64,000 nucleotides of DNA from Podarcis cretensis (lineage: Eukaryota): NCBI GenBank assembly GCA_951804945.1, contig OX638153.1, positions 72,168,001-72,232,000 of the forward strand, written 5' to 3'. Positions within the stretch are counted from its first letter, which is position 1. Each line of letters begins with the position of its first letter. A program made the translations under genes and the position numbers. Under the pieces are notes generated by a model. That model saw only the letters and a program-made list of their open reading frames with translations. It had not been told where the DNA came from and searched no databases. Positions 10,001 through 56,503 of the stretch are shown here, piece by piece.

Positions 10001-10210
10001 CCTGAGACCTTTTTGCATGCAAAACATGTGCTCTGTTCCAGACCTATGGCCCGTCCTCGGTTTCTGGCACCTTAAAGACTAACCAATTCATTGTGGCGTA
10101 AGCTTCCCTAGACCACAGCCGGTTCCATCAGATGCGTGAAATGTAATCTAAAACAGCCCGCAGGCTTGAAGGCGCCAATCAGCCTCTTCGCGGCTCTTGT
10201 GGCTCTCCAT

Positions 10211-10239
10211 TTCAGCACCAGAGACCCCTGGACAGCGCC
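10211..10239 (+). promoter_or_regulatory. Non-canonical (wide-spacer) REST/NRSF RE1 element
   Basis: TTCAGCACC-agagacccct-GGACAGCGCC: both consensus half-sites are perfect, with a 10-nt spacer instead of 2. Confidence 0.65.
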
Positions 10240-10707
10240 TTCAGTTCCAGGCAGAAGCAACGACTCAGGCAAGGCAAGGCTGCGCTCCGGCACTTAGAGA
10301 TGGAGGCGCTGCAGTCATGCAGCGCTCAGAAAGAGGCGCTGTTTTCGTGACGGGGCTGCTCAGATCCTAGGCAGTCAAAGGTGACTTCGTGGCAGGCCGA
10401 TCGTAACCTTGCAGCGGAAGAAAGGACAGAGCCACAAGCCCGTTGTGAGGCTCGGGAGAAGAGGTGGGGGGTGGGGAGTGAGCATGGGGGCTGCAGGCTC
10501 GCCGCTCAGATTTCCGAGCCCTCGAGGAGAGGCTGGTTCCTTCCAAGGTGTCACGACATCCTAGCCTCCGCCCGCGGAAAGGAGCTGGCCAGGGTCCCCG
10601 AACTAACGTGGCGTCTCCGGGGAAGGAGCAGAGAGCCAGAAGGATCACCCTGAGCGACGGGAATAAAGCAATGTTGCACGGTTCTACCGCTTGAGTCATG
10701 CGCCAGA

Positions 10708-10710
10708 ATG
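10708..10710 (+). CDS. GUCY1B2-like: sGC beta-2-like exon 1 (ATG only)
   Basis: CCAGAATG|GTGAGT in a CpG island; an ATG-only first coding exon is typical of sGC beta genes and joins in phase to YGFIN. Confidence 0.8.
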
Positions 10711-13700
10711 GTGAGTAGCGACTGTTTGTCTCCCCCACCGACCCCCAACGATCTTCCACGGGTGGTTTTTGTTTTGAAAGTTAACAGAGGGATCCGGGAT
10801 CCGGAGGAGATGCCGATGACTTTGTGTCAAATCGATTTTAGAAAAGGCCTCCTCTGAGCAGTGGGAATCTGGGAGGGAAGTTGGGGGGGGGGGGCGTTGC
10901 TGCCAGTTTAGCTCTGTTTTGCTTTTCCCGGAGAGAAAGAAAAGCAAGGGATCCTAAGCTACTTTGCTCCGGAGCAGTCCTAGTAACTTTGGAGCAAGGG
11001 CGCTGAGGACCCTGCTAAAGTCTTGCCAAGACCATCTTGGCAGAAGCCAGCGCCACGAGCAGGGCGACCACGTTCACTCGACGCCCGTCAGTCAAGTGGC
11101 TGGAGGACCAGCATCAATAGATTCTGGAGATGGCAACCTGTAGCTGTCCCCTCCCTCCTCGCGTCAGTGGCCGACCCAGCCTCCAATGAAGTCCGAGGAA
11201 CTGTGGCTGATGTCAATAGGGGGCGTCTGGCCGCACATCGGTCTGGATTCAGGAGGTAGTAAATAAAATATCCCGAAGCGCACAAGCGTCTGCTCGCGCC
11301 AAGTAAAAGTCAAGAAAAGAGTATTACGCACATTCTCATTTTAAAAAAACAACAAACAACAAAAACGGACAAGCCCAGTTGCCCCTGATTTGTTGTGGTG
11401 CGCTAGGACAGCGCTTGGTTTTGGCAATTCAGTTAGCGGCTTGGAGACGCATCAGCGCCGCTGGGCAGAGAGGCGCTGCGGTTACTAAGACCGCCAGCCT
11501 ATCAAGACGCGCTTATCTCTAAGCTTGGTGGGATTCGGGGCTGATTCAATTCTGCTTCACACCTCAGAGCGTTTGATGCCTTCTCCTATTTATGGATCCT
11601 GGAGGCACGCAGAAGGAGGCAAGAGAGAAAGGCTCCCTGTGCAGCAAACTTGTAAAGGGTGGGGATTGTGGAGGACATTCGTTTTTTAAGGAGCTCAGAG
11701 GGCGTCCAGAAGAAAAGTGCTTATTGATGAACTGGGGGAATAGGAAACTAAGAGGAGCGGGTGGGCAAGAGCTCACCGTAATTGTACTGACCCAAACAGG
11801 TCATTTTGATCAGGCACTTCTTCTGGGGATGCGCATATTCTGAATTACTAATCTGCACGACTATTACTGGACATCTAAAGTAGAGTCTTTTCTCATATGC
11901 TTTGTAACAGTACCAAAAAATCAAGCAGACATACAGAGAAAGCTATGCAGAGAGTGTGCCCCTGAATCAGGAAAATGGCAAATTCTTCCCTGACTTTTAA
12001 GGGAAGGGTGTGTTTGTTTCCTTTGCTCCTGTTTCTTTTTTTATGATAAATTTTTATTAATATTACACATATATACATATAAACATATACAAAATCCATT
12101 ACATAACTTACACATATTATATCCACTCCACAAATCATAAGTATAATACACAGTTGTTTTAGGCTCTGCCGAGCCTTGGACTTCCCTCCACTCCTTTGGT
12201 AAGTATCAGATAAATTCTATGGTCACGTATTTTATCTCTTTTACATAGTAACCCCTTACTGTTAGAGTTATTTCAACCCTGCCAGTGTCATCTGAAATTT
12301 AGTTCCAATATAGATCCAATATTTATTCCAATTATCATGAAATTTCTGTTCATCATGATCCCTTAGTCTTCCTGTTATTCTAGCGAGCTCGGCATAATTT
12401 GTCACTTTAACCTGCCAATCACTTATATTGGGTATAACCTCCGTTTTCCAATTTTGTGCTAACATGGTTCTTGCGGCTGTTGTTGCATATAGGAATAATG
12501 TCTTATCTTCTTTTTTAATTTCTTTACCCGTCATTCCTAGCAGAAAAGCTTCGGTTTTTTTGGGAAAAGTGTATTTAAAGATTTTTTTAAGTTCGTTATA
12601 GATCAATTCCCAAAAGCCTTTCACTTTGCTACATGACCACCACATATGGTAGAAGTCACCTTCTACTTCTCCGCATTTCCAACATCTTTTGTTCTTCAAC
12701 CTATAAATCTTAGCCAGTTTTGCTCCTGTTTCTGTGCTTCTGCCCGGTAAGGATGTTGAATAGCAAGAACATAGGAAACTGGTCCATCTAGCTCAGTACT
12801 GTCAGGCTGACATGGTCGCCTCAATATGTTGTTGGACTCATCAACCACAGTCATAGAATCATAGAATGGTGGAGTTGGAAAGGACCACAAGGGTCATCTC
12901 GTTCAACCCCCTGAAATTCAGGAATCTTTTGCCCATTGTGGGACTTGAACTCACAACCCTGAGATTAAGAGTCTCATGCTCTACCAACTGATCTATCCAA
13001 GTCTGTCATGTAGACTATAATGTTACGTTTTTAAAATTCTGAATTACAGCAAAATAAGCCTGAAGACACTAATAGTAAACTTCATTATCTGGCCGATTCT
13101 GTATTCGATGCGTATTTGTTTTGTAAAAGCAAGCCAAAGTTTCATGTAATAAATATAAATGTAAATATCATCCAATGTGATGCAAATGTAGCTTTTTAAA
13201 AGAGAATCTTCTATTTCCCCATTTTCATGCATTTGCTTTTGCAGTATGGCTTCATCAATACATGCCTGAAGTCTTTGGTGGTTGAAAAATATGGTGAAGA
13301 AGTATGGGAGAAATTAAGGTAATTTATACCTGGAGGAATTATTCATAGACTTTGACAAGTCATACACGTTGACAAGTGCTTCGCTGTATGCCCACCAACA
13401 CATCATAGTCTTAGACATAAGCCTAGTGAATAACAGGAGCATATGGAGTTTGTCCTACTGAGGTGGATCATTTGGTCTGTCTGTCGATCCCAGTATTGTC
13501 TACCCCAACCTTTGCCAACCCTACTGCATGCCAGATGTTTTGGGTTACAACTCTCATCAGTCTCAGCCAGTGTGGCCATGCTGATGGGAGTTGTAGATCT
13601 ATCGTAATCATCTAGAGAGGGCACCATGTTTGCAAAGCCTAGTACACTCTGCCAACAGAATTCAGAGCCCTGGGATTGGGGTGGGTGGAGGGAATTGATA

Positions 13701-14960
13701 CCATGGCAGCATTTTGCAAAGACACAACATTACTCAGTCAGGAAAGGAATATTGTTGCATGCCACCCCAATCTCTGGGTGGTGTGAGATTCTAAGGGTCC
13801 CAAGTGCTTACCGAGGGTTTGTGTTTTCTTCAGAATGAGGGACAGCAGACACTGTGGTGTCTTCATGATGTATGGTTTATTTACACATATATACAACCTG
13901 AGCCCACAATGGAGAGATTCACAGCAATTAACACCCCAAGAGGTTTTTGCTTTCCCCCAAAGACACAGCCTTGGATTGAAGCAGAAATCAAGCACCTCTT
14001 TCTCTCTCTCAGCCTTCCACCTGCTTTCATCTCTTGCCTTTGTATTTCTAACTACCAGCTCAGGGAGGGGGCCCACCCATTTGTTCTCTGGCACCAAGCC
14101 ACTTCCTTTGTTCCCTCAATGGCTCTTCACCTCACCAGGAAGCTAGCCTGGCTATTCCAGGAACTAGAAGAGGGCCAAGGCAACCTAATCCCCACAACTC
14201 ATAGCAATATGAATGGCTTTCAGAGCAGAGAGACTGAATACAGGGACTACCCATTAGATTAAATCTATAGAATTGTAGCACCCCAAAGGAGAGTAAAAGC
14301 ACATACATGCCTAACATCTGGAAGCACAAGACTCTCATAATGACTCAGCATTTGTCCCCCGCCCCTGAAGAAAATGCCTTTAGCCAAAGAATATTTAAGT
14401 GAAAGTAGAAGGAATACCATATTGCAGGAGAATGATTTCCCTGCTCTGAGGATAACCTGAAACAATTACTGAAACAAAGGCAAGAGATTGCCTCATCACA
14501 TAATGCTACTCTCCTCTAATTGCTTTATTTGTTATGCAAAATGATATAGAATGGCATGTGGTTGGGTGAACATTTTTGTGACAGAGCAGCGGCTGAAAAC
14601 TCATCATACTGGAATGAAGCCACATCAAATTTTGCAAGTATTACAGCAGGCATCCTTAGGAAGGGTTATTAACTCTAACTGAAAGCATTATATTCTCCCT
14701 CCCTCCCTCTGGACATATTCTCTTGACTGCTATGGGCTTATTCAAGGCCCACATTTTAGGAGCATAGGAATCTGCCTTATACTGAGCCACTCCGCCAGCC
14801 CATCAAGTTCAGCATTATCTATGGGCGTGCTGAGACCCTGGGATTATTGCATTAGTTTCCTTGGTTATAATGCTAGTGCAACTCTCCTGGTTCCCTGGTT
14901 TCTAACATGCCTTTTACATTGCATTACCTGTTGTGGTATGGAACTGTGGCTTTCTGTTAG

Positions 14961-15004
<44 letters not shown>

Positions 15005-18000
15005 TTATTTATATTCCGCCCATCTGGCTAGGTTTCCCCAGCCACTCTGGGTGGTTTCCAACACAATATCAAAATACAGTAATGCATCAAACATTAAAAG
15101 CTTCCCTAAACTGGGCTGCCTTCAGATGTCATCTAAAAGTCTGGTAGTTGTTGTTCTTTTTGACATCTGGATCTACTGAGGTCCAGCTCTGAGAGTTCTG
15201 CAGTTCCCTCACTGGGAGAAGTGAGGTTACAGGGAACCAGGCAGAGGGCCTTTTCAGTAGTGGCACCTGCCCTGTGAAACATCCTCTCATCAGATGTCAA
15301 GGAAATAAACAACTCTCTGACTGAAGGCAGCCCTGTTTACGGAAGTTTTAATGTTTGATGTTTTATTGTGTTTTTAATATTCTGTTGGGAGCCACCCAGA
15401 GTGGCTGGAGAAACCCAGCCAGATGGGTGGCATATAAATATTATTGTTGTTGTTGTTGTTGCTGCTGCTGTTGTTGTTATTATACAGCTATCCCACAGTA
15501 AATTGCATTTGTACCAGGGACCATGGCATGACACAACAGCAGGTGTCATAGGACATGTCACTACCCTTTATGTGCTTCTGTGTGCTTCTGTTCCCTTATG
15601 ATTACCTCATGAAAATGGTGGGAAAGAGCTATACCAGCAGGGCAGAATGTCTCATTTCACTGCTTGAAGCAAAACAGGAAGTGCTGCTGTTGTTGCCACA
15701 TGCCTTCTACTGATGCTGCCAACTGTTCTGCTGACACCATGCACCTTTTCTCATCTGCTGTGGGCAGAGAAGCTGCACAGCCATCAGGGCCAATTTTCGA
15801 TGAGATCTCAACCAAATAGATGTAATTGTGCCCAAAATTGGCATCGGAGGCAGCGGTGCTTCTCTGCCGATGGTAGAGGTGGCGGGCAGGTGGGACACCC
15901 GTGAGTGTGCTGCCGGAGGGCTTTGGCTCCCTGAAGCAATGGCCTCATCCTCTCTAATGACTGAGCCAGCTCTGGAACTATATGCCAGAATACTGCCCAA
16001 AATTTCATCACATGGCTTGATCCTAAGAGGGTCCAGTAGTGGCAGGCCAGCTGACTGAATGAGAGACTGAACCCTAAAAATGTTATTAAAATGCCAGCCA
16101 ATATTTATTTCTATTACAGAGTCCAAACTGGAGTACAGGATACCTTTTTGACTTTTGAAGTTTACAGAGATGAAATCACAATGCAGCTGATTGATAATGC
16201 ATGCAAAATGCTAGGTACGTATGGCTTGGAAAGTAATGCAGCTCTGTCTGCACCACTCCACCAGCAGACCCTCCAAGTGTCCTTATTTTCCAGGGATATC
16301 CCTGATTTAGAGAAGCCATCCTGGTTTCTGATTTGATCTCACTTTTCCTTAGGATGTCCCTGTTTTCATTGCAGAAATGTTGGACTTATCCAACCCCCGA
16401 GCCATCTGAAGGTGGCAATCCTGTATAGGGATTTTTTTAAAAAAATGTTTAATGTTTTCTTATGCTTTTATATATGTTGGAAGCTGCCCAGAGTGGCTGG
16501 GGCAACCCAGTAAGATGTGTGGGGTATATAATATCATTATGGAACAGCATGTCCCCATTTTCATTAAAGAAGTATTGGAGGGTCTGCATCAGCCACCACT
16601 GTAAAGCACATTTAAAGCACATGACTTTCCCCAAGGAATCCTGGGAACTGTAGTTGGTTAAGGGTGCTGGGAATTGTAGCTCTGTGAGGGATAAACTACA
16701 GTTCTTGGTGTTCTTTCGGGAAAGTCATGTGCTTTAAATGTGTGCTGCATACACAGCCCTAGTTAAACTGGGTTCTTGATCCTATAATATTAATTAATAG
16801 ACAATTATTTTCCCAGATGTTCCCCCCGATATGGTCCTGAAGCAGTTTGGAGAATATTTCTTTGAATTCTGCAAGCGATCAGGTTATGACCATATGCTGC
16901 GGACTCTGGGAGGGAACCTCTATGAATTTATAGAGAATCTGGATGCATTGCACAGCTACCTAAGTCTGTCTTACCAGGTAAGTGGAAATAACTTTTGTGG
17001 TTCTACATACACAGCACATGTTCACAGCAGCATAATGTGAGATATGTCTATGATTATTATACATACTCTCACTGATTAGTTACTTTGGGTGTATTGACCT
17101 TGGGCTGGAAATATTTAGCTGCTGTTTGATTGCCTTTCTCCATTGCATATGGAGCATAGGTGCTTGAGTCCAGTCAGAGTTTTTTTGCGGGGGGGGGGGG
17201 GGAAGAATCCAGAGAGATGTAACATTAATTCATGGAATGCCCCCTACCTCTTAGAACTTTGGACAACAACTTGTTTTTCTATATTTGTTCAATAGTGAGC
17301 TTAATTTCGGCCACACCTTGATTGTAATTTGGTAGAACCACCACCACAGCCCAGATCATGTGCTTAATTTGGTGCCCAGGAAGGTTGCCCATTTGCTTCA
17401 GGGCAATATTGAAAAATAAGCTGAAATATGAGATGTGTGATTATTAAGAACTCTGGGTGTTTTTCAGGAAATGAACGCTCCTTCATTTAGGGTGGAAAAG
17501 AATGAAGATGGGTCGATGCATTTGCATTATTACTCAGACAGGCGAGGCTTGTGCCATATTGTTCCAGGTATGTAGTTTCCTCTGGAATGGATTTTGAAAG
17601 GTGGGATAGTCAGCTATTGGATTAATGTCTTCTGAATGTCCTGCACACTGTGTTTTTCTCTTTACAGACCTCTTCCAAACCCTCCATTCGCTATAAACTA
17701 GCAATTGTCCCAGTGGTGTGATGTCGTGCTGATTCCTGCCATCATTCTTATTATATATTTATTTAGAGAATAATAGCTTTGTAACAAAGACTGGCCCTCT
17801 ATGCACTGACTGAAAAACAAACAAACAAACAGGAAAAAGGACTTAGTTAAAATGTCATAAATTTACGGTTGCCATATTTCAAGATGTAAAATTCACCCCA
17901 AAGAGGCAAAGAGTGATACTCAAATACACACTTTCTGGTTCTGCTGGCAAAAATCTGGACATTTGTCAATTTTTCAAAATTCCACATGGATGCTACTATC

Positions 18001-21000
18001 ACTGTTTGAATCCCAGACATACCTGGGAAATTCCTGACATATGACAACCCTAATAAATTGCTATGGTGAGTCAAATGTTTAATTTGAAATCAATCTGGAT
18101 TTGAGTTTCTTGGTGTCTCTGGTAACCTTTCTTTTACATCATGGCTGTTGGCTGGTATAATGGATGTATGATCTGTATTTTTTTATTGGTACTGTTCCTG
18201 TTTTCATGGCCTTTGGCTAGAAAATAAACTTACGTTGTATCATCTATTGGGCTGCCTTTGAAGACTTCTTGGACACTATAATTTGTCCATAATACAGCAG
18301 CTAGGCTGGTTGGTGAGGATTGTGCTATCATAATGTGTTGAAGCAGGAACCCCTGATGAGCTTTGTGGCACATGGGTGATCCAGACATGGGGGGAAATGC
18401 TGCAAACAAGTGTCTGCTAAAAGCAAAAGCAACGTCTCTAAGCTTAGTATTAGTTTAGGGTGATGTGATGGAGGAAAGGAAAGAAAAAGGCAGAGTAGGG
18501 AGTAGGTGCAGAGGAAGATTTTTGCTCTCACTGACAAATCCAGTTTGCAATCAGAGGGATTTTTAAAAATTTATCTAGAAAGTAAATCCCTCCCCCCCTC
18601 TCACTCCAGAAACACTTTAAAAGTATGTAGCACCTGAGCCCCTGGACCCATTTACTTGTAATTTAGCAGATTTTATCCAATCTTTATGGGCTACAATACC
18701 TGCAAATTTCATGCACTTCTGTTAACAGAGGGGGAAAGTTATAGCCATTCAACAAATTCCCAGTTTGTGAATGGAGGCAAGAGAATGAATCAGACTCGAA
18801 CCCCCAAGCATCAAACTGGCATCCAGAACAAATCACTGCATATCCCCAATAACATCTAGTTTTTTTTTCCTTTTGCTTCAGGAATCATTGGTGCAGCAGC
18901 TTTGGATTTTTTCAACATTGAAATTTCCATGGAAATAGTCAATCAGTCAGAAGAAGAAGAAAGAACAGGGAAAAAGGAACACATTGTATTTCTTGTGACA
19001 CAAAAACCTGTATTTTCATACAGAAGGCGAAATAAGTTCTCTTCCTCTTCACCGTTTCTTTCAAGTTCTGGAACACTGGTGGAAAAACAGCTGAATAAAG
19101 AGGTACTGTGATATTCATTTTTGTATGGAGTCACGTATGTACTGGCAGGAAGACCTATATATAAAATATATAGTATCGAAGCAGTTTTAAAGTAATAGGT
19201 TGTCATCTTCTTCTACATCATCATCATCATCATCATCATTGAAATTACTATTACTATTAGTATTGCTACTATTATTATTGTTGAAAAAAGAAAACAGGTG
19301 TCAATATAAGACACTTCATTTTCAGAATCCAGGCATATGCTCAAAACTCTGGATATTTGCTTCCAAAGAGTTCGAAACAGTGAAGGATACTGGAAGATAT
19401 CCCAAGCGCATTCCAATTCAAGAGTAGGAAGAAATTTAACTTGCTTGTGCCTTCCATTATTACATTAATTATTTTGCTGATGCAAAGACCTTGTACACTT
19501 CTCACTTTTAAAATTTTAACAGTTTGGCAATTGTTTTGGGTTCATTCCACAGGACACTGAAAGAGCCACGAACAAGAACAGGGATAAAGCCAGCCCGCCT
19601 TCGACATGCCCTGTCAAGAAAAGTCACTGGGAAACAATTAAAGGAATTGTGACAATAGGAAAAGGTAAAAGTGTAACTTTCAAAAAGCATTGAACATCAT
19701 TCATTAATACTTTCAGTATGGCATTTAAAACCCAGGCTTTTTCATTAAATATTATTAATTTCTATCCCATCTTTCCTCCAAGGAGGTCAAGGTGGTGGAC
19801 CTTCTTCATTTTACCCTGATAACAATCTTGTGCAGTGGGTTAGGCTGAGAGATGATGAATAGCTCACGGTCCCCCAATGAGCTTCATGTCTGTGTTGGGA
19901 TTTGAATTCTGTTCTCCAAGGTCCTAGCCCAACACTAACCACTTCACCCTGGTGGCATCCCAGTAAAAACGACCGCGTTGTATTAAGGAAAAACACAAGA
20001 TAATGGTTATGTTACATGTCATACATTTTTATTTTTGAAAACCCTTCCCAGGTTCTAATTTATAGAACCTGTTCAGCCTGTTCTTCCAATCACATCATAT
20101 TCATATACATGGAAGGTCCCCGTGTACATTATTATGGAGTTCTTGGAGGAAGACGGAGGGAAATGAATTTATTTATGAATGAGAATTAAATTATCTTGCA
20201 GAATCATGCTACCTGAATAATGGTACTGATTCTATCAGGGAATTATGGTAGGACTGAAATTACCACCCCACCCCCCATATTGCAGGACGACTTCTGAAAG
20301 GATTTGATCCTGTCTATCCTAAGACCCTTTGCATAGATCCGAAGACATTTTGCAATGGGCTTCCTTTCCACATTGTATTTGATGAAGAGGTGAGTGAAAC
20401 TAATGATAACTTGTTTCCCTACATATGTGAACCAAACACAGCCATTTTACAACACAATCTTCTGCATAGCAACTCAGAAGAAAATCACAGTGAGTTCAGT
20501 GGGACTCGTTCCAAGACAAGTAGGCATAGGATTACAGATTCAATCACCTAATGTAATAAATTGTTTACTGCTACTGCCTACTGTTGACCTAGAAGCTTGT
20601 TCGCATGATAAGTTAACCTGAGACATTCTGTTTCATAATATATTAATACCGGGATTAATAACTACCCTTCCAGTAGTTAGCTGCTGAAAATTGCCCAGAC
20701 GGCAATCAAGCTTCGTCTTATAGCCTACTTTTCACCATTATTCCAGCATGGTCTCAGCAATACTGTTATGTGAGACAATGCAAAATCCACTCCAGCCTTT
20801 AAGTAGAGAGGCGTGGGATGGGTGCTGTGAGGATCAGTGTGCTGCCTCTGCCCCCTGTCACTCTTCTGATGGTGTTCCATCAATGGTAGGCCAATCTTCT
20901 AAAGCAGGAAGCCTTATGTCCCTTCCCTGCATGCATTCAGGGTTCTAAAATGAACAGCAAAGCTTTCATGTGTACAAGAGGCCCCCTCACTTCAGAAGAT

Positions 21001-24000
21001 CACTCTCCAACTCATGGAGGATGGTCGGAGCAGCAGCAAGGGGTTGGAAATAGTGGACTTCCGTCTCATGCTTCCTTACCTTTGGGATGGGGGACCTTTG
21101 GCCCTCTGGATGTTGATGGACTCCAATTCCTACCAGCTCCAGCAAGCCTGGCCAGTGATCATGGACAATGGGAGTTGTATCCCCAACCTTGCTACTGCCC
21201 TATCAACCTAGTGATAATGCTACCAGGTGGTTGGCTCTGTGGTGCTACCATTCCATGCTGGCTGTTCTCGTTCTTACTCCAGAGGTAGGATTGCAAGACA
21301 ATTCTGAGGGGGGTTGACGCTAAAGAGTTGTGATTCTATCTTTTAAGCTTAGAGTGAAGCAAGCCGGAGTCAGCATTCAAAAGATCGTGCCAGGCCTTCA
21401 GACACTAGGCATCCACCTCAACCAATACTTCAGTATCGTACGTCCTGAAGTGAAATTCACCATCTCCAGTGTCCAGAAATTTATCAACAGCCAATTTGTT
21501 TTCCGGACCAAGAGGGAGATGATGCCAGAATCTTGGAAGCAGCGTCCTATGTTAGAACTGAGAGGTAACTCATTGTCTCCATAAATATCGGGGTCAGGCA
21601 TGATTAAGGCGACTAGATGAAGAGCTGGCTGCAGGGCTGGGCAACCCTTGAAGAGTGTTAAGGCACTTGCTTCAGGCCGAGTTCTGAGGGGTGGGACACC
21701 CACTCCCCACCCACTGTTACTCCCCACTGCCTGTCGCCTGGACAGTAGCAAATATGGGAACACCCTCCCCACAAATCTATTCCCTAACCCTCTCCCCTCC
21801 CCTTGAATTCTGAAATTGTGTCTTCATTGTAATAATTGAGACAACTTTTTATATGTTCTGGGTGTTAGGATTCTTTTCCCATGTTGCAGTCATGGGATTG
21901 GCTTTATCTCATGACGGTGTATGTTTTCATTCCACATTGTGGGAAGTGACGAAGACAGGATGTTTTTACTACTGTGTTTCCGTGATGTAGGACATTTGTC
22001 CTTTGTTCTCTCTTTGCTGTATGATGCTGAAGAGGAAGGAGCTGAGTTACGATGTTCCAGGTATATATATGTTAATAAACGTAGTTTAGCCAAAAAGCTG
22101 TGCTACTGAGTCTGAACGCTGACTGCCTATATTCTGCTGATCCTGAAGTGTGCTGATGCCTCTGAGGTATCAGTCGCTGTGATGTTCGAACTGGAGAAAG
22201 ATTTTGAATCTCCCGACCGACCAGGGGGGAGAGAACATGCCAGTCGCTGTGATGTTCAAACTGGAGAAAGATTTTGAATCTCCCGACCGACCAGGGGGGA
22301 GAGAACATGCCAGTTGGGCATGTGTCTCTGCTAGACTCCTACTCATGTGTAGGACCTCCTGACACTGGGTGGAGTAGAAGTCTAGTGAAGGGTTGGAAGT
22401 TTAACAATGCAGATATAATCTGGAGGGAAAGAACAGCAACCAAAAACGTAAATAACTAGAATGAATGGCATGCAGGAAATGTACCTGTGATTCTGTATTT
22501 TTTTTAATCAGGTCAGATGATTTGGATGGAGTCTGCCCAGTGCATGCTGTACCTTTGCTCCCCTCTCCTGCGCACGCTGCATGAGCTGGAAGAGAGGCAC
22601 ATGCACATCGCCGACATCGCCCCCCATGATGTCACCAGGGATTTGATCCTTCTGAACCAGCAGCGGCTGGCTGAGATGGAGCTGTCCAATCAGCTCGAGA
22701 GGAAGAAAGAGGAGCTGCGGATTCTGTCAAAGCATCTCGAGGAGGAGAAGAAAAAGACGGAAGCCCTTCTCTACGCCATGCTCCCAAAGCATGTGGCCAA
22801 CCAGCTCAAAGAAGGGAAACGAGTCGAGGCAGGTGAATGAGCGTGAGGCAGATAAAACATTTGGGGCCAATGTGCAGGTGCTTAGCTTTTAAGGAAGGCC
22901 AAAATGAGAAACTTCAGAGAAAAATTGGTCCAGGCTCCCTTTCCCCCTTATTCGAATGTTGCCATTAGCCATTCATTTTAATGCCAAGGGTTGGAAACTT
23001 GGGGTCCTTCACAAATTTGTTGAACTTCAGCTCCAGTCTCCCACCCAGACAGTATGGCTAATAGTCAGGGAAGAAGGTAGTTCATTGGTGTTCCCCAGAG
23101 CACCTCCATTGTTTAGAGGGCACATACTTCTAAATATCAGATGCTGGGGAGAAAGAACAAGGGAGGGCTGTTCTTATCAGGTCTTGCTTTGGAAGCTTGT
23201 AGGAAGCATCTGGTTCTCCACTATGAAACTAAATGCTGGACCAGATGAACTTTTGATATGATCTAGCAATGCTCTTCTTGTTTTTATATGGATGGAGAGT
23301 TAAGCATGTGCTTAACTCTTATAACAAAAAGGACTGAACCACTCTTGGCCTAAATCAGGGTGAGAGTCTGTGACTCTCCAAGTTCTGTTGGACTACAACT
23401 CTCAACATCCCAAACCACTGGCCACACTGGCTGGGGCTAATGTGAGAGATGGAGTTCAACAACTTTTGGAGGTCTAGAGGTTCCCCATCCCCAGGCTATA
23501 TCATATGTATATATAATTTTATAGTTGGCTGTTTGGATCTTTTGCTGTGCAGGTGCATGAATTTTAGCTACATAATTTATTTATTTTTTATTACAAGATC
23601 TAGATATCTAGGAATGAATGAATAACTTGAGTATAGGTACAAGTCTTGACCACATTTATTCACTAAACTATCCCCACCCCTAACCTTTGTCCTTTTGGGC
23701 TTGCAGGAGAGTTTAAAGAGTGCACCATATTATTCAGCGATGTTGTAACTTTCACCAACATTTGTGCCCAGTGCGAACCTATTCAGATTGTCCTCCTGCT
23801 AAATGCGATGTACCTGCGATTTGACAGGCTGACCACAGTGCATGATGTCTACAAGGTCAGTGACAAATGTTCAGCCACAATTTAATGAAAGTGATGTTAG
23901 GGGGAAAGATGTCAACAGTGGCGTAGCTTGGATTATCAGCAGCCGGGGCAAGGCAAGTAATTTGCACCCCCTAACCCATGGATTTGCGCCCCCTAACCCG

Positions 24001-26378
24001 TGGATTTGCGCCCCCTAACCCGTGGATTTCCCTAACCCCCAGATGTTGCGCCCAGTGCGGCCGGCCCCCCCTGCACCCCCACGCTACGCCACTGGATGTC
24101 AAGGACCATTTCTACCCCCTCCTCTTCCTCCTCCCCCCTTGGTACCTTGTAATTCCCTGCTCTCTTTGGCTCCACCTTCTCAGCAGCCCCTATAAAAGAA
24201 AGGAGAAAAGAGATGGGTAAAATTCTCCTGTCTTATTCCCGATACCTGGGCTCTGATGCCCCCATTCCTTTTGCTTTGCTCTGCCTGAATCCTGTCTAAA
24301 GTGTGTGCATCTTCTCCGTCTGCTTACCCTTAATGTGGGGGTGGGGGTGGAAATGTCTTTGCGATGACAATGTGGGCAAGGCTCTCACAACATGCCCACT
24401 GCAGCCTGTTGAAAGACATCAGGTGGGCCTGAGGGAGTGGGATGCAAGTAGCAGCAGCAAAATGCACAAAGGAAGTTGAGGAGGAAGTGTGCTGACTAGC
24501 ACATAGCAGCAAGGGAGAGATAAAAAGCAAAGGTGACCTCTGGCCCCATGAGGTTGTTTGGAAGGAATATGAATTGAGAGTGGGAGAATAGGAAAATGGG
24601 GTGCGGGGAGGAGTGGTAGGAGTGGTAGAGATAAAGCAGAAGGTCAGGGTGAGACAGCTGTGAGAGAAACATCTGTGAAAGAAAGGGATGGGGGGGAGGG
24701 CAGTAAATCTGAGGTTACAAACTCTGTGGCAAGCCTGAGATGCCAGAGAGAATTTATGAGGACTGCATATAAGAAAGAGGATCCTGTGCTGAGAAGCTAC
24801 TAGGGGAAACCTGGAGTAAGGAACCATTTTTGGACTCTGAGGTCACCCTGTGTGTTGTTATAGGGAGCAAGAATCCTGACTGTTTTCCTCTGAGGCCCTG
24901 GTCCATTCTATGGCCTCTGTGCACTGGCTTATCAGTAGCTGTATCAGAAGAGAGGGTGGCCGTGATTTTAAAAAAACGCCGCGCAAAATCACAAACAGAA
25001 TGCATTGTAATGCTTTAGTTTCTTGAAGAACAAAAAAAGTTTGCATTATTGTTCAAAACAGCAATGTTACGTGTTAAAATAATTTGAATATCAAAAATGT
25101 TAGAATTCCATGCTAACGATATTTCACACTAACCCTCTCTCCCCGAAACCAGATCTTAAAATAATTAGGCAAGTCCTAACTAATATCACAATTCATTCAT
25201 TGATTTGTAAAAGTATTTATAGTGTTAACACACCACCCCAATCTGAGCGGTGCGAGGTTCCAGGGGTTCCAGGCACTTACCCTGGAATAATAATAAGCTC
25301 AGGCAGAGACTATTGGCCTGGCAGGGTTTGTCCGCTTCTTTTTTTAAAGGTGGAAACCATAGGAGATGCCTACATGGTAGTAGGGGGTGTTCCTGTGCCT
25401 GTATCCACACATGCTGAACGGGTTGCCAACTTTGCGCTGGGAATGATCATAGCTGCAAAAGACATAAAGAATCCAGTGTCTGGGAATCCTATTCAAGTGA
25501 GTAGCTAATAGACACATGCACATTATCTGCTTACTATTTGCAAATGGAGATGACGCAATGTAGGGCCATAATGATCAGCAATCTCAGACTTGATTTGTGC
25601 ATCATGTGCAGTAAATTGTAGGCTTCTAGGCTGTCATAATAAAAAAAAGCCAGTATGTAAAAGATCCCGTTGGTTGGCTTGACAAGTTTGCTGGGATGAC
25701 TAAAGACCAACGTCCCAAAGGCCATCAGTTCTTGTCAATTGCAAGATATTTAATGTGCACACAGAGCTCTGAACCCTGCAAGGGTACCATAATTCAGTTC
25801 AAGGGAACAGGAAGCTTTGCTCATGCAAAGGGATGAGTGTGTGGAGCTGGCTTGTGCAACACAACACAACAGGGATCCCTGATCATGCAGGAGGGCTAGT
25901 CTCTGCACACAGATTTGGACTGGGGGATATATGGCTAAAGGTTCTGTTTTTATATGTGAGATACAAGGGCTAGAAGGACAGGAGACCATGAGCACACACA
26001 AATGTCTCTGCAGGATTGGTCTTGAGGCCTGAGATTCCCCCATTCCAGTTATAGAAGTTCCCATTTTGTGTACTCAATAACTCCATTTTCTTTTAAAGGG
26101 TTGGGGATGTTGAGCAAGACCTTCCTGGTAGATCGTGTCCTCCTGTGTCAGCTGTAGTAATGTCCTTGCAAGCGTGATCGAGAGAATTGCACTTATTTTC
26201 AGACCTTTGAATTCAGGGCTAGAGCTTCAGTTTCTGTCTCTCAGAAAGAACAGCCTGATAGATTTGCTTCCCACCGTGCACCACAATGCTTATGAATAGT
26301 ATCAATTTTTATGAAGAATTACTATGGCCTGGGTTCAACAGTGCTTACAAGCCATTTTGGCATGGAAGCAGTATATAA

Positions 26379-26411
<33 letters not shown>

Positions 26412-29400
26412 ACAGAGTTCATCATAGGGAACTGTGGATTATGGCTTGTGACTGTTTAGTTTGTGTTTAGAACTTATGGATAGATTGTGCTTGAAACGAA
26501 ACCTGTTGTGGAAGTGATCTTTTCCCCAAAAAACTCTTGCTCAGATCAGAGTTGGGATCCACACAGGGCCTGTCCTTGCTGGAGTTGTTGGAGAAAAAAT
26601 GCCACGTTATTGCTTGTTTGGAGACACAGTGAATATAGCATCCCGGATGGAGAGCCATGGGGTACCAAGCAAAATTCACCTGAGTGCCAGCGTTCATCAG
26701 TGAGTAAGCTCTGAGACAATCCATTAATAGTGCTTTGCACTGAACTCTTGACTTGGCATATGTCTCTGAATATCAGCTGCTGGGGAGCACCCACACCCAC
26801 CCACCCTTGTGATAGGATAGTGTCTGATTTCTTATTGGAGCTACTTTAAAAGTATTTAGATTTGTTCCCAAATTAGTGGAGTTAATTACCAAATGTTTCC
26901 TTCCTACAAAAATACATGTCATTTACATTTTGGCTGTTGAGCTCTACTTTACTGGGGAATGGTGATTTTTGTGGTTGTGGTTTTGAAAATACAAGATAGA
27001 TGATGGCACGATTTAGAGCACAGAAGTTCCTAAAATGATTTGTTCACAGATGATGGTGACCTAGCTGTATCAACATCATCCAAAAAGAATCCTTAGATTC
27101 TGGGTGTAGATTCAACCTTCCACACTCAAGATCCCCTAGGGTTAACGTGAGATCCTTGTTTTGCTGAAAATTGCAGTGGGATCATTTTTAGTGTAGCAAT
27201 TTGGGTGGTGACATGGAATGTCGTGTTTGTCTGCCCTGGCTGAGATGTACTTTAAATGCATGTTACAAGAGAACAATGTGGAGAAAGGCATTAATGTAGA
27301 CAAGAAGCCTTATAAGAATCCTTGCTTCTGTGAAGGGATGAATTACTGCAATAAAATGCATGTTTCCACCTGCGCTTTCTGCATTTTAAAGAAAATAGCC
27401 ATTGACTTTAATTAATTCTGAATGAGTGGATTTTTATTTTTTTTAGATTCTAGTATTTATTTATAGCATCTTACCTGAATGGCCCCCACCAATTTGCACT
27501 GAACACTGGGACATAAGCATCATTGTATAAGAACAGTGATATTGCTAAGTGCTGACAAAAGGGCAGGCACAGTTCATGCCATTCAGGACACTGTCATAAC
27601 ACCACTAATATTTCAGGCAGGTGCAGAGCCTGTGCTTGAAGGTGTTGGGCTGTGAGTTCAGAGCCATCATTCTATAGCCATGAGTCAAGCATTTCAATGC
27701 ATGTCGTTTTATAGGCTTCTGCTAGTTAAATTACCATTGTGTCACCATTCCAGGTCTTTCAATAGAACCTTATCTATGTTGAACTTTCCACATTAGAGGC
27801 TGATATAATTATTGTCATTGCGCCATTTTCATAACCCACTGCTTAGATGTGCTGCTTTATTTATGTTTCAGGTGCCTAAAGGACAAGAATTTTGAAATGA
27901 TGGAAAGGGGAGAAATTGATGTAAAGGGCAAAGGGAAAATGCACACTTACTTCCTGGTCCGAAATACAATGGCAACTGAGGATGAGGTCATGGGAAGACC
28001 ACCGAGGGATCCTGTTCCCAGCCATGAATCTGCTCAACTGTCTCTCGAGTGCAGCGCTGAAGCATTCCAAAGCACATGTCCACAAGGTAGAGGAAGGAGA
28101 ACAAATGGACTCCTTTTTATTTCATCATTTTGCTGTTTCTGATGCTCAGGCCATGAGTGCCCTTGCTTATGTTGTCAGCAGGGCATCACCCATCATGCAC
28201 TTTATCACATACACAGCCCAACAAGATAACAACAAGAATCTGCCCACAGCACAGGAATCAATCTGCAATAATAGCAATCAACACACACACACACCACTCA
28301 AACACAAAAACAAATCTCACTACAGCCAGCCAAAGACAACCAATCACACCCTAGGCCACCCCCAACATCTCTCACTACCAAGGAAATGCAACAAGCAAAT
28401 AGTAAGAGAACCCACATGTGATGCTGACACAAAACCCCACACATACATTAAGTAGAAGAATAGAAGCAGGGCCACCCCACCCCACTCACCATTCCTCCCT
28501 CCACCTCTTCCCCCCTTTTCTTCCTAATGTAATGCTAATGTCTCACAACAAATGAAACTGATCTGTAGAAAACGCAGCTTGAAAAAAGAGACATTGCGGG
28601 TATTTTTGTAAACTAAGAAATCTTAATAAAAATATATTTGAGAGAGAGAGGGAGAGGGAGGAAGAGAGAGATCAGCAGGCTTGAGGGAACTCCAAAGTTA
28701 ACAGAAACATAAAATATTTTTTTTTTGATATTGCGAAACAAGGGACTCCAAGGGAAGTGAGCAAGCTAACCATGGAAAGCTGACTGAATTTTGAGGGGTG
28801 GGGAACAGAAAACCAGGTGGAAGGCAAAACAACATGGAGTATTGTGTTGGAGGACATGGCTGACTTACTGGAAAAGTTAACAGGAGAAGCCATACTGCAA
28901 TATTTTGATGCAGGACCCAGCTGTAAAAAATAAATGACACGTACCTATTTCTATTCCTTTTCAGATTCAGATGAGACATCGCTTCCTATCATAGCAATGA
29001 AATATGCAGATAGCCCCATAGAAGCACACACCAGCGTCAAAGGAAGAAATGAATCAAGAGCAAAGGACTTCGCAGGTACAGTGGTACCTCGGGTTACATA
29101 CGCTTCAGGTTACGGACGCTTCAGGTTACAGACTCCGCTAACCCAGAAATAGTACCTCGGGTTAAAAACTTTGCTTCAGGATGAGAACAGAAATCGCACA
29201 GTGGCGGTGCAGCAGTAGCGGGAGGCCCCATTAGAGAAGCGGTGCTTCAGGTTAAGAACAGTTTCAGGTTAAGAATGGACCTCCAGAACAAATTAAGTTC
29301 TTTACCTGAGGTACCACTGTATTAAGAAGTCAGGCAGAAGTTAGGGTTTGTGGGAATGGGGCTATGATACACCCCACCTCTGGGGTGGGGCAATGGTCCT

Positions 29401-30845
29401 GAGGGGCTCTATCCTTGGTAGCAGTGACCAAGGCCAGCAGCCAAGCTGCCTGCCCAGCCCTGCCAAGCCGCCTCCCACCCACCCAATGGGTCTCCTCACA
29501 GGAAGGCAGGGAGGGAAGAGGTGGAGACAGAGAATGACAACAGAAAGAATGTAATCTGGGGCATGGAGGGGCACCCTGCCACCACCTTCACCATCAAGAG
29601 TAGGATGGGTGCCAGAGGGAAGAGGGCAGCAATGTGGGGGGCACAGTGTGATGATTTGCCCTGCCCCCACCCTCCCAGGGACAGTCCTGTCAGGATTCCA
29701 ATAACTTCAACCTTTGATGGGAGACACAGCAGTCATGTTTGCCTTGTTGCCCTGCACTAAGAAATAACTTGATGTTGATAAATAACTCTATGATTCTATG
29801 ATACTGACATCATATGATGCACCAGTTTGCATTCACGCTACTGGCTCTCAAATCACAGCACATTCAAGTTAGTGGCTGAGTAGAGGCATAGCAAGGGTAG
29901 GTATTCATTTGGGAAGAAGGAAAACAGTCCAACCCACAAACTAACCTATAGCTTCTGGAGATATTTCAAGGCAAGAAGCCTGACTTTTGCTTGTTTTAGC
30001 TTTGGGTTTTATGTACATTCTCATGTTACTAGAGAGATGAAGCTCTGTGTTAGAAAATGCATGCAGTATAAAATGATTGAATTATGGTGCAAATGTCTTT
30101 TCTTTTCTTTTGTCAAGAATACATGGTCTGGAAAGCCATAGCATGTATTAGATGAAAAAAATGCTCATTCAAACTTTATATCAGTATTTCTATCCAGCAG
30201 GTCTTGTGGCCCCTGTGAAATGGGAGGCTGTTTCAGAGTAGCTTTTAAAGAAAATCTCTCAATGTGTTCCAAGCAAAATCTTTGTCCTATAGTACTCAAA
30301 TATATATTGATGAGGCAAGAAGACACCTAAAAAGGGTTTATTCTCCACAGAGTGGAGTGTAGAGGGGTGTTGGGAGAGGATTCCTTCAACATAACACTGA
30401 GATAGCCAACACGGTGCCCACTAGATGTTGTCGCACTACAACTCCCATCATGCTGGCTGGGGGTGATGGGAGTTGGAGTCCAATAACATCTGGAGGGCAC
30501 TGCATTGGGTATCCCTGATGTAGCACATAGCACTTGGCACTGAAAACAGAGCTTCTCATCGCGGTTCTCTCCATTCTCAGGCTTTAAAATTACCCCAGAT
30601 TTTCAAGATCATGTTAGACTCAGGCTTGATGCTGTTATTAAGACAGGGCCCGCCATCTTTAAGAGCTCTCATGGAAGGAACATGTCTTTACAGGCAAACC
30701 TCGTGATTCAGAGACCAATGTAAGTCTCCATGGTGACCAGCAGTCAAGCAAAGATCCTTATCATCTTACACAAGGCAGAAGCAAGCCAGCAGCAGCGGCT
30801 CCGCGGATCAGGAACGTCCGATCCAATTTCTGCAATTTGCTTTAA
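10708..30845 (+). CDS. GUCY1B2-like: Soluble guanylate cyclase subunit beta-2-like gene, 16 coding exons, 2337 nt / 778 aa (span of spliced CDS)
   Basis: All 15 introns are GT-AG and exon phases join into one open frame: [13 protein letters not shown]... (H-NOX start), LDALHSYL (heme His103), YYSDR (YxSxR), FPFH-like PAS region, LERKKEEL coiled coil, [32 protein letters not shown] cyclase motifs, ending CNLL*. The beta-2 type is indicated by the retained first metal Asp and the CaaX tail. Confidence 0.93.
12037..12718 (-). mobile_element. 5'-truncated L1 in cyclase intron 1
   Basis: ORF2 C-terminus CWKC...HMWWSC...[10 protein letters not shown] (12268-12699), 3'UTR and A-tail; 15-bp TSD TTTGCTCCTGTTTCT at 12022-12036 and 12719-12733. 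Confidence 0.93.
13245..13318 (+). CDS. GUCY1B2-like: sGC beta-2-like exon 2
   Basis: ttttgcag|TAT GGC TTC... [25 protein letters not shown] |gtaatt; 74 nt. Confidence 0.93.
13771..14280 (-). mobile_element. Possible solo LTR
   Basis: LTR-like composition with TGTATATATGTGTAAATAAACC on minus; ends and TSD not resolved with certainty. Confidence 0.35.
14961..15482. mobile_element. Two head-to-head L2 3' ends
   Basis: 14961-15170 is the minus-strand 3' end with (TAA)n; 15171-15482 is the plus-strand 3' end of the same family as 46860-47700. Confidence 0.8.
16120..16214 (+). CDS. GUCY1B2-like: sGC beta-2-like exon 3
   Basis: ttacag| [31 protein letters not shown] |gtacgt; 95 nt. Confidence 0.92.
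16608..16747. repeat. Palindromic MITE-like repeat
   Basis: CACATTTAAAGCACATGACTTTCCC ... GGGAAAGTCATGTGCTTTAAATGTG. Confidence 0.7.
16817..16977 (+). CDS. GUCY1B2-like: sGC beta-2-like exon 4 (proximal heme His)
   Basis: tcccag| [16 protein letters not shown]...[15 protein letters not shown] |gtaagt; His codon at 16951-16953. Confidence 0.95.
17468..17567 (+). CDS. GUCY1B2-like: sGC beta-2-like exon 5 (YxSxR)
   Basis: tttcag| [33 protein letters not shown] |gtatgt. Confidence 0.95.
18882..19102 (+). CDS. GUCY1B2-like: sGC beta-2-like exon 6
   Basis: cttcag| [39 protein letters not shown]...QLNKE |gtactg. Confidence 0.88.
19553..19664 (+). CDS. GUCY1B2-like: sGC beta-2-like exon 7 (linker)
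   Basis: ccacag| DTERATNK...[16 protein letters not shown] |gtaaaa; phase 0 to 1 is required to join exons 6 and 8. Confidence 0.8.
20286..20389 (+). CDS. GUCY1B2-like: sGC beta-2-like exon 8
   Basis: ttgcag| [35 protein letters not shown] |gtgagt (start of HNOBA/PAS). Confidence 0.92.
21348..21564 (+). CDS. GUCY1B2-like: sGC beta-2-like exon 9
   Basis: tttaag| [17 protein letters not shown]...[16 protein letters not shown]...MLELR |gtaact. Confidence 0.92.
22171..22314. repeat. 70-bp tandem duplication (2 copies, 1 mismatch) in an LTR-like segment
   Basis: CAGTCGCTGTGATGTTC[G/A]AACTGG...GAGAACATGC x2. Confidence 0.9.
22512..22832 (+). CDS. GUCY1B2-like: sGC beta-2-like exon 10 (PAS end, coiled coil)
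   Basis: aatcag| [18 protein letters not shown]...[14 protein letters not shown]...[22 protein letters not shown] |gtgaat. Confidence 0.95.
23707..23855 (+). CDS. GUCY1B2-like: sGC beta-2-like exon 11 (cyclase start)
   Basis: ttgcag| [50 protein letters not shown] |gtcagt. Confidence 0.95.
23916..24094. mobile_element. Non-autonomous hAT element
   Basis: Perfect 12-bp TIR CAGTGGCGTAGC and 8-bp TSD GATGTCAA on both sides; internal ~22-bp tandem repeats. Confidence 0.92.
25350..25496 (+). CDS. GUCY1B2-like: sGC beta-2-like exon 12
   Basis: ttaaag| [15 protein letters not shown]...NPVSGNPIQ |gtgagt. Confidence 0.95.
26545..26699 (+). CDS. GUCY1B2-like: sGC beta-2-like exon 13
   Basis: gctcag| [51 protein letters not shown] |gtgagt. 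Confidence 0.95.
27872..28086 (+). CDS. GUCY1B2-like: sGC beta-2-like exon 14
   Basis: tttcag| [31 protein letters not shown]...STCPQ |gtagag; the 3' boundary is less certain (weak donor). Confidence 0.85.
28965..29075 (+). CDS. GUCY1B2-like: sGC beta-2-like exon 15 (low-conservation tail)
   Basis: ccttttcag| [18 protein letters not shown]...RAKDFA |gtacag; 111 nt, phase 1-1, open. Confidence 0.6.
29079..29319. mobile_element. Tc1/mariner-type MITE inserted in the exon 15 splice donor
   Basis: TA | CAGTGGTACCTC ... GAGGTACCACTG | TA; near-identical to 2181-2422. Confidence 0.92.
30694..30845 (+). CDS. GUCY1B2-like: sGC beta-2-like terminal exon ending in CaaX box CNLL*
   Basis: ctttacag| [14 protein letters not shown]...[17 protein letters not shown]; phase matches; CaaX as in rodent beta-2 (CVVL). 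Confidence 0.8.
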
Positions 30846-31229
30846 GAAGCTCCTGAGTTTTAAAGTCGAAGAGTACAAGTGTGTTCTGTAATGTAATGTT
30901 TTGCTGTTGCTCTCCTGGAGTCCTGACTTCGCACACAGTAGTAGTACATCAAGTGCACTGATATTGACATATTTTGAAATCACTGGTAGCAATAATGAAG
31001 CAAACTCTGGGCATTTCCCTGTTTGCAGTCTTGACTTGTTTTCTGTGTATGAACATGACACATCTTGTTGTGTGAGATTGAAGGGAGTTGTGCTCCAGAT
31101 GTCCGCGTATTTAAAAGTCTTTGTCACCTTATCCCCAAACTGTGTTTGACTTCCAAAAAAAAAAAAGAAAAAGAAAGTAGAAACATAGGAGGATATAATT
31201 GGCATGGCAGTGCATTTAAGCTTTACTAA

Positions 31230-56465: not shown

Positions 56466-56503
56466 AACACTAATTATTTGTAGACTGAAAAGTAGTCATT
56501 ATA

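Follow-up and report, generated by a model that had tools for sequence, protein, structure and literature searches.

Soluble guanylate cyclase (sGC) is described in textbooks and pharmacology guides as a family of four subunits (alpha-1, alpha-2, beta-1, and beta-2), a count that is based on mammals. Proteins of the beta-2 type are usually grouped with the atypical, oxygen-sensing cyclases Gyc-88E/89D of Drosophila and GCY-35/36 of C. elegans, haem-bearing soluble cyclases that can act in sensory neurons without the canonical alpha/beta-1 pair. The subject of the present work is a gene of the beta-2 type, located at positions 10708-30845 of a 64,000-nucleotide stretch of the genome of the lacertid Podarcis cretensis (assembly GCA_951804945.1, contig OX638153.1, positions 72,168,001 to 72,232,000 of the forward strand); this whole stretch is referred to as the window, and positions are counted from its first letter. 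The gene is read as an intact, transcribed beta-2-type sGC gene belonging to a group of its own, here called clade A, which is sister to the GUCY1B2 group (clade B); its origin would lie in the vertebrate genome duplications, and its product would be a nitric oxide (NO)-sensing, homodimer-competent, and membrane-tethered cyclase. This reading, taken as a whole, is given a probability of about 0.78.

The rodent beta-2 subunit is reportedly activated directly by NO (Saraiva et al., PMC4480006). Gucy1b2 marks a small set of olfactory neurons in the mouse, and a gene called gucy1b2 does likewise in zebrafish (PMC4480006). A full-text search of the literature yielded no paper separating two groups of beta-2 paralogues or noting their reciprocal loss; orthology databases may show it. 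Many genome annotations already include the gene itself, under the name 'beta-2' or 'beta-2-like'.

Two beta-2 clades in jawed vertebrates

Clear soluble guanylate cyclase sequence is encoded by stop-to-stop open reading frames (ORFs) located from 13 to 28 kb on the plus strand. To build the exon model, a crocodile homologue was placed on the window by tblastn and the junctions were solved for GT/AG, reading frame, and fit. The outcome is a plus-strand gene of 16 exons, all of whose junctions are GT-AG, with a coding sequence of 2337 nt for 778 aa and a single terminal stop. Pfam searches of the exons gave, from the N- to the C-terminus, HNOB in four pieces, HNOBA in two (the larger with E 3.7e-31), and Guanylate_cyc in four. 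This order, HNOB, HNOBA, coiled coil, and class III cyclase, is the one expected for beta-type (H-NOX-bearing) sGC subunits. Database searches used single exons or full-length database proteins as queries, and the joined 778-aa model was used in local alignments and trees. Against 1.8 billion representative proteins, the largest exon (22514-22834) matched a 781-aa protein of Crocodylus porosus with 98% identity over the exon. The model itself is 97.2% identical over 777 residues to a 'beta-2-like' protein of Zootoca vivipara and 87-89% identical to the proteins of other squamates, which by itself assigns the window to a lacertid lizard.

The position of this protein was determined in a maximum-likelihood tree of 73 proteins (LG+G4, 737 columns; support given as ultrafast bootstrap/SH-like approximate likelihood ratio test). 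Clade A, supported at 100/98, unites the window protein with those of squamates, turtles, crocodiles, birds, amphibians, coelacanth, lungfish, ray-fins, and sharks. Clade B, supported at 99/99, holds all mammalian GUCY1B2 proteins together with second copies from reptiles, amphibians, and fishes. The two clades join at 97/87, a hagfish protein stands outside them at 100/99, and further outward follow a sea cucumber and an acorn worm protein and then other invertebrate beta-2-like proteins; the beta-1 proteins, one from Podarcis included, lie far from the beta-2 groups. Inside each of the two clades the branching is that of the species tree. The window protein shares 74% identity with the clade A protein of the horn shark, against 62-65% with the clade B proteins of lacertids. 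Measured from the A/B ancestor, the clade A tip is the shorter one in all eight species with both copies (0.30-0.51 vs 0.49-0.91); clade A is thus the slower-evolving copy and clade B the faster one.

The initial annotation had proposed that the gene is not the orthologue of GUCY1B2 but its sister, and the tree supports this: the window gene is an ancient sister of GUCY1B2. The opposite view, an ordinary GUCY1B2 orthologue that simply moved to another place in reptiles, would agree with the database name 'guanylate cyclase soluble subunit beta-2', which is carried by clade A proteins of chicken, Xenopus, Anolis, and Chelonia (green turtle), and with the domain order, catalytic residues, and CaaX box common to A and B. 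It can hardly be correct, however, since mammalian proteins join the B copies at 99/99 and since lacertids (Zootoca, Podarcis), crocodiles, turtles, amphibians, coelacanth, lungfish, Megalops, and rays each possess A and B. A translocation of this kind would also leave the genome with no other beta-2 gene, whereas Zootoca and Podarcis relatives hold a second one on another chromosome. In approximately unbiased (AU) tests, forcing clade A together with mammalian B cost 41 log-likelihood (lnL) units (p 0.005) and forcing all sauropsid copies together cost 381 (p 5e-6), p-values that are somewhat weakened by the choice of the tested groups after inspection of the tree. The translocated orthologue was rejected by the former test and a reptile-specific duplicate by the latter.

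Taxonomic range and proposed reciprocal loss

A crocodile clade A query returned, as its 120 best proteins (65-100% identity), sequences from squamates, turtles, crocodiles, many birds, amphibians, coelacanth, and lungfish, and also from sturgeon, gar, bichir, teleosts, sharks, and rays. The initial annotation described a fifth sGC subunit kept in reptiles. It is indeed kept there, but its range is wider and includes birds, amphibians, lobe-fins, ray-fins, sharks, and rays. Many cyprinids have a clade A protein, and no Danio entry was present among the matches listed. Mammals are absent from the 120 best matches, drawn from annotated proteins, of two clade A queries, which is in line with the proposed loss in this group. 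The cluster of the tilapia clade A protein (P0418) includes an nr entry labelled Mustela putorius furo; as it shares at least 90% identity with the fish protein, it looks like sample contamination and not like a mammalian clade A gene.

The second copy became visible in the representative search, where a less similar beta-2 protein was found in Rhinophrynus, Ranitomeya, and Varanus, species that are also in the clade A list. When such a second copy from a gecko served as query, the matches were GUCY1B2 proteins of monotreme, marsupial, and placental mammals, alongside proteins of Zootoca, Podarcis muralis, P. lilfordi, other squamates, tuatara, turtles, and crocodilians, as well as amphibians, coelacanth, lungfish, Megalops, Clupea, and rays. 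Birds are missing from this list of annotated clade B proteins, though crocodiles and turtles are present. With mammals absent from A and birds absent from B, the bird 'GUCY1B2' and mouse Gucy1b2 are not orthologues. Humans have GUCY1B2 as a pseudogene (PMC7555810, PMC3879169) and, like other mammals, lack clade A, so that neither beta-2-type gene is left in a protein-coding form in the human genome.

Chromosomal position and origin of the duplication

Wherever a species has both copies, A and B occupy two contigs that differ in length, each of chromosome-like size. The respective contigs (A and B) measure 98.2 and 120.5 Mb in Zootoca, 45.4 and 203.6 Mb in Crocodylus, 39.1 and 34.6 Mb in Megalops, and 125 and 217 Mb in Narcine. 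A tandem arrangement of the two genes is thereby ruled out. The position of GUCY1B2 in cattle and other mammals is between RNASEH2B and FAM124A (PMC3879169). A list for chicken chromosome 1 at 171-172 Mb comprises RNASEH2B, INTS6, FAM124A, SERPINE3, DLEU7, and WDFY2, without GUCY1B2 (PMC10976558). The clade A gene of chicken is found on a contig of 23.7 Mb, a length too small for chromosome 1. Neither RNASEH2B nor FAM124A is present in the 64-kb window, which is thus not the position of GUCY1B2 (clade B). CCDC195, to which a neighbour of the window gene is tentatively assigned below, is listed together with CUL3, DOCK10, FAM124B, SERPINE2, and WDFY1 in a human 2q36 deletion (PMC12549294), and the same genes fall inside one interval in the dog (PMC9755188). 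The pairs FAM124A/B, SERPINE3/2, and WDFY2/1 are consistent with what is expected of two genome-duplication blocks.

The timing fits a pair of ohnologues as well: both clades hold cartilaginous fishes, ray-fins, and lobe-fins/tetrapods, and the hagfish protein lies outside. It is supposed that the genome duplications of vertebrates separated A from B at a time when the hagfish lineage had already branched off and sharks and bony vertebrates had not yet diverged. One copy would have been kept in the RNASEH2B-FAM124A block and the other in the block of CUL3/CCDC195/DOCK10 and FAM124B, with later losses of A in mammals and of B in birds. Alternatively, a small-scale event in the vertebrate stem could have duplicated the gene, in tandem or to a distant place, with a likeness of the neighbourhoods that is coincidental or secondary; this is considered quite unlikely. 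Timing alone cannot tell these modes apart, the gene-order evidence obtained here is limited to the window, and CCDC195, the sole neighbour tested, is without a known paralogue in the other block; yet in every species with both genes A and B occupy different chromosome-sized contigs, published lists put FAM124A, SERPINE3, and WDFY2 beside B and FAM124B, SERPINE2, and WDFY1 in the CCDC195 block, and the duplication falls after hagfish and before the jawed-vertebrate radiation, in the interval expected for the genome duplications. A whole-genome-duplication origin of the A/B pair, as first proposed for this locus, is accordingly a well-motivated proposal that draws on timing, chromosomes, and paired genes, with the blocks known from published lists.

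Gene structure and transcription

All features of the gene are on the plus strand. Its start lies in a CpG-rich island (10000-11750; GC 0.55-0.61, CpG observed/expected 0.6-0.83 vs about 0.4 in the flanks), the probable promoter and 5' untranslated region (UTR). Inside this island, the coding part of exon 1 consists of the ATG only (10708-10710, donor GTGAGT). It is the first in-frame ATG past a stop, it is the unique ATG directly followed by GTRAG between 9.5 and 13.2 kb, and together with exon 2 it yields the canonical MYGFIN start found in Anolis, Sceloporus, and Paroedura. A possible long form of exon 1 (10711-10761) would use an alternative, weaker donor (GTGGTT after 10761) and add 17 residues. 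It follows the Zootoca RefSeq model P0171, in which the homologous ATG reads on for 54 nt to a weaker donor, giving an 18-residue leader instead of M-YGFIN; the window, read from 10708, has the same start.

The H-NOX domain is distributed over exons 2 to 6. It starts in exon 2 (13245-13318; Pfam HNOB positions 1-24, tblastn, splice fit) and continues in exon 3 (16120-16214; HNOB positions 29-59, splice fit). Exon 4 (16817-16977; HNOB E 1.9e-13) contains the proximal haem His, model residue 103, exon 5 (17468-17567; HNOB E 1.2e-11) contributes the Y-x-S-x-R haem-propionate motif and the distal-site Ile identified in the residue table, and exon 6 (18882-19102; tblastn 75% to crocodile P0001, splice fit) comprises the end of the domain and a variable linker. 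The linker extends through exon 7 (19553-19664; tblastn, splice fit). The HNOBA/PAS-like domain begins in exon 8 (20286-20389; tblastn 83%, splice fit), proceeds through exon 9 (21348-21564; Pfam HNOBA E 2.4e-9, splice fit), and ends in exon 10 (22512-22832; HNOBA E 3.7e-31), the query of the representative search, which also encodes the signalling coiled coil. The cyclase domain opens in exon 11 (23707-23855; Guanylate_cyc E 1.4e-14) with the first metal Asp in LFSD, followed by the specificity Glu and second metal Asp in VETIGD of exon 12 (25350-25496; Pfam) and the specificity Cys, Asn, and Arg of exon 13 (26545-26699; Pfam E 2.6e-24). Its end and the start of the C-terminal tail are on exon 14 (27872-28086; Pfam). 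The tail goes on in exon 15 (28965-29075; tblastn to the crocodile protein) and closes in the coding part of exon 16 (30694-30845) with a basic stretch, the CaaX box CNLL, and a TAA stop at 30843-30845. The 3' UTR begins at 30846 and runs past 30900, the point to which the transcript contigs are colinear.

None of the public runs with matching contigs is recorded as RNA. Several small contig sets, here called transcript-like, nevertheless contain 5-13% of the words sampled from 21300-30900, approximately the exon share of this interval. Contigs of four runs (X1, X2, X5, and X6) were compared with the window over 25300-30900. Single contigs of 3037, 2861, and 2959 nt (X1, X2, and X5; two organisms, two studies) span the last four introns, all spliced out, and their joints (25496>26545, 26699>27872, 28086>28965, and 29075>30694) are each GT..AG and identical to the model. 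X6, from a third organism and a third study, displays two of the four modelled joints; 29075>30694 is seen in four runs. These contigs represent transcripts of the modelled gene in spliced form, derived from closely related organisms (95-99% alike), and their match to the last four junctions establishes that the gene is transcribed. Judged by the coordinates of its record, which has 413 nt more beyond 30900, the X1 contig would have room for the complete coding sequence, flanked by a 5' UTR of about 226 nt and a 3' UTR of about 470 nt.

Between window and transcripts, 6/6 differences in the catalytic exons are synonymous (3/3 in exon 12 and 3/3 in exon 13), which argues for purifying selection on the gene; in the C-terminal tail, synonymous and non-synonymous differences are mixed. 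A pseudogene was ruled out by the intact frame, the spliced transcripts, and the synonymous changes in the catalytic exons. The complete 778-aa beta-2-type sGC of the initial annotation is hence confirmed, with Pfam domains, 16 GT-AG exons, and spliced contigs in agreement.

Some peculiarities of the transcripts and introns were also recorded. A low-depth X6 contig joins exon 12 (25496) to an acceptor 22 nt inside exon 13 (26567), which would shift the frame, and is probably a minor non-productive splice form. In the transcripts of organism A (X1, X2), CCG is inserted in frame after 30800, where the C-terminal tail is rich in Ala and Pro. The two repeats of intron 15, at 29040-29413 and 30349-30535, are covered in the transcript-like runs to summed contig depths of 1e3 to 3e5 and show many loose ends; they look like very abundant elements of the short interspersed nuclear element (SINE) type carried in many transcripts. 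Intron 1 harbors, on the minus strand, a 3' fragment of a long interspersed nuclear element (LINE) at 12268-12699, the protein of which resembles 60100-60573 of the same LINE family, and a tRNA-derived SINE piece at 12938-12995 (Rfam tRNA 37 bits, partial model).

Predicted mechanism of the clade A protein

The residues of haem binding and catalysis were compared by aligning 28 rows of clade A and 25 of clade B with three beta-1 proteins and three outgroups. His103, Tyr132, Ser134, and Arg136 (the haem His and the Y-x-S-x-R motif) are invariant in 28/28 A and 25/25 B rows. The distal-pocket site is Ile in 27 of the 28 A rows (the remaining one has a gap) and in all B rows, as in NO-selective beta-1, and a distal-pocket Tyr occurs in this set only in the sea cucumber protein. 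All 28 A rows share D481, E521, D525, C591, N598, and R602, i.e. the two metal Asp, the specificity Glu and Cys, and the catalytic Asn and Arg. The first metal Asp is present in all 53 A and B rows, in hagfish, sea cucumber, and acorn worm, and is replaced by Gly in beta-1, which explains the need of beta-1 for an alpha subunit. As the full catalytic set is present, a single chain of the window protein holds both halves of the class III cyclase active site. Of the 28 clade A rows, 25 end in a CaaX box, in animals as distant as sharks and birds, and so does the sea cucumber outgroup; this points to geranylgeranylation and membrane tethering as a putative ancestral feature.

The product is likely a membrane-anchored, NO-sensing cyclase able to act as a homodimer, a proposal that builds on the invariant residues and on what is known of rat beta-2. 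In the N-terminal H-NOX domain, the conserved His and the Y-x-S-x-R motif would hold a ferrous haem, and the Ile that replaces Tyr in the distal position would allow binding of NO (and CO) and exclude O2. Ligand binding would be relayed through the PAS-like domain and the coiled coil to the class III cyclase domain, where two copies would form two complete active sites and produce cyclic guanosine monophosphate (cGMP) without an alpha subunit. The basic stretch and a geranylgeranylated CNLL box would tether the enzyme to membranes.

Sensing of oxygen and not of NO, as in atypical fly and nematode cyclases, would accord with the grouping of beta-2-type proteins with invertebrate 'beta-2-like' or atypical cyclases and not with beta-1. 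Moreover, the mouse Gucy1b2 neurons are said, in work of 2016 attributed to Bleymehl et al., to be needed for the response to low environmental oxygen. This option is nevertheless deemed very unlikely, as the site of the O2-stabilizing Tyr carries the Ile of NO-selective beta-1 in both clades.

Dimerization was modelled for the coiled coil plus cyclase region (residues 420-690) of the Zootoca protein, which is 97% identical to that of the window. The homodimer reached an interface score (ipSAE) of 0.69 vs 0.02 for the best control, a mark attained by 21/30 proteins solved as one-chain pairs and by 0/23 solved as single chains. Three runs share at least 90% of the contacts, and the predicted local distance difference test (pLDDT) value of the partner is at least 86. 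The pass may, on the other hand, reflect memory of solved sGC dimers. A role mainly as a partner or competitor of alpha, in a heterodimer or as a dominant-negative regulator of alpha/beta-1, gains from this doubt. Early work on rat beta-2 reportedly saw weak alpha/beta-2 activity and inhibition of alpha-1/beta-1, and the solved sGC holoenzymes retrieved by the structure search (6jt0, 6pas) are alpha/beta heterodimers. Such a role is judged unlikely, albeit with an appreciable chance of being right: the invariance of the first metal Asp throughout A, B, hagfish, sea cucumber, and acorn worm is hard to explain otherwise, and the homodimer model stands well above its controls. A self-sufficient homodimer thus remains the preferred proposal.

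Weight of the evidence and implications

Several points weigh against the composite reading put forward at the outset. The hagfish sequence is partial and sits on a long branch, making the lower time bound of the duplication soft. The two blocks were taken from published gene lists. That mammals are missing from A and birds from B was observed among annotated proteins, and for the mammals, where it bears on the proposed loss, not in genome searches. Either donor of exon 1, 10710 or 10761, may be used in the Podarcis gene. Homodimer activity, ligand choice, and prenylation are all extrapolated, and the literature search found no biochemistry of any clade A protein. In the surroundings of the gene, the convergent neighbour is identified as CCDC195 with weak support, and no coding exon of DOCK10 was found in the window by ORF lists, a codon-usage scan, a splice-aware exon scan, and Pfam searches of the best candidates; the proximity to the DOCK10 3' end that had been noted for the gene is therefore not confirmed, though the window may hold a DOCK10 3' UTR.

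A broader proposal can be put forward tentatively, at somewhat less than even odds. Jawed vertebrates would ancestrally have had five sGC subunit genes, of which A encodes a slower-evolving, membrane-anchored, self-sufficient NO sensor that was lost in mammals, B was lost in birds, and the 'GUCY1B2' of chicken, Xenopus, and many fishes is the hidden paralogue. The persistence of both A and B in reptiles, amphibians, and several fish lineages over more than 400 million years would argue for a distinct, non-redundant, and possibly chemosensory role. What is new is a fifth vertebrate sGC subunit family concealed under the name of the fourth. The initial view of an essentially uncharacterised branch has to be modified in this respect, because the gene held in databases as GUCY1B2 of chicken, Xenopus, Anolis, and many fishes is the clade A gene. 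With a fifth subunit that is strongly conserved between sharks and birds, most vertebrates would have a larger NO/cGMP toolkit than mammals. The misleading name affects the transfer of expression and knockout data from chicken, frog, and fish to mammals, and likewise the question of what mammals lost or re-assigned. The clade A protein itself is a candidate haem-based gas sensor that would work at membranes without an alpha subunit.

Neighbouring genes and other features of the window

The gene was initially described as convergent with CCDC195. Strand and orientation of candidate exons agree with this, and one exon provides a lead to the protein. A candidate first coding exon with a coiled coil (MDGNKQLMKVIHEMRSEIIKLERENRALRGQL; 39596-39874, minus strand, ATG at 39874) has the highest codon-usage score outside the cyclase gene and gave an ESM-Atlas feature match of 0.80 to the cluster 'putative coiled-coil domain-containing protein 195', which is a lead only. 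The candidate middle exon (RRYSISSSVPSLPGNK; ORF bounds 36593-36892, minus strand) has the second-best codon-usage score, and the candidate last exon (VSFLLPMDMSRYSENQGS...IIEKDM, then a stop; 34419-34548, minus strand) is an ORF with a good acceptor at 34548. Searches of the candidate exons against Pfam returned no family, and the middle exon gave nothing in the Atlas. The middle and last exons presumably correspond to parts of the human CCDC195 protein.

Two GC-rich islands, one inside the probable CCDC195 gene (about 34900-35300) and one in otherwise gene-free sequence (about 51600-52100), contain long open frames in both orientations that matched no family. An L1-type LINE occupies 55338-60573 on the plus strand. 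Its ORF1 (55338-56462) encodes 375 aa, and its ORF2 (56489-58894) encodes 802 aa with endonuclease and reverse transcriptase domains (Pfam RVT_1, E 4e-41). After ORF2 the element is no longer intact, and a SINE-like piece interrupts it near 59.3-59.6 kb.

Comparison with known systems

Gyc-88E/89D and GCY-35/36, which are not in the tree by name, differ from the window protein in features of an oxygen-binding pocket that the latter, with its distal Ile, does not have. Closer relatives among invertebrates are the beta-2-like proteins of the sea cucumber Apostichopus (P0018) and the acorn worm Glandiceps (P0022), sister to vertebrate A+B. They possess the same catalytic set, and the Apostichopus protein ends in a CaaX box (CTLL) like that of the window. 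In contrast to the clade A and B proteins, they predate the duplication; they are about 46% identical to the window protein, and the sea cucumber protein has a distal Tyr where A and B have Ile.

The best solved relative is GUCY1B1 (6jt0, 6pas; E 9e-130), with the same haem ligands in H-NOX and the same architecture. The split between beta-1 and beta-2 is deep, as both types occur in invertebrates. Beta-1 differs in its low identity (about 39% between a lizard beta-1-type protein and the window protein), in the Gly at the first metal Asp, and in the lack of both the long tail and the CaaX box.

Mammalian GUCY1B2, the representative of clade B, is the system most similar to the one described here. 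It shares with the window protein the order of H-NOX, HNOBA PAS-like domain, coiled coil, and class III cyclase, the same invariant haem and catalytic residues, including the Asp lost in beta-1, and a long C-terminal tail, often with a CaaX end, at about 63-66% identity. Several placental models of clade B, however, end without a CaaX box. GUCY1B2 further differs in its chromosome in species that have both genes, and it has formed a separate paralogue group since before the split of sharks and bony vertebrates.

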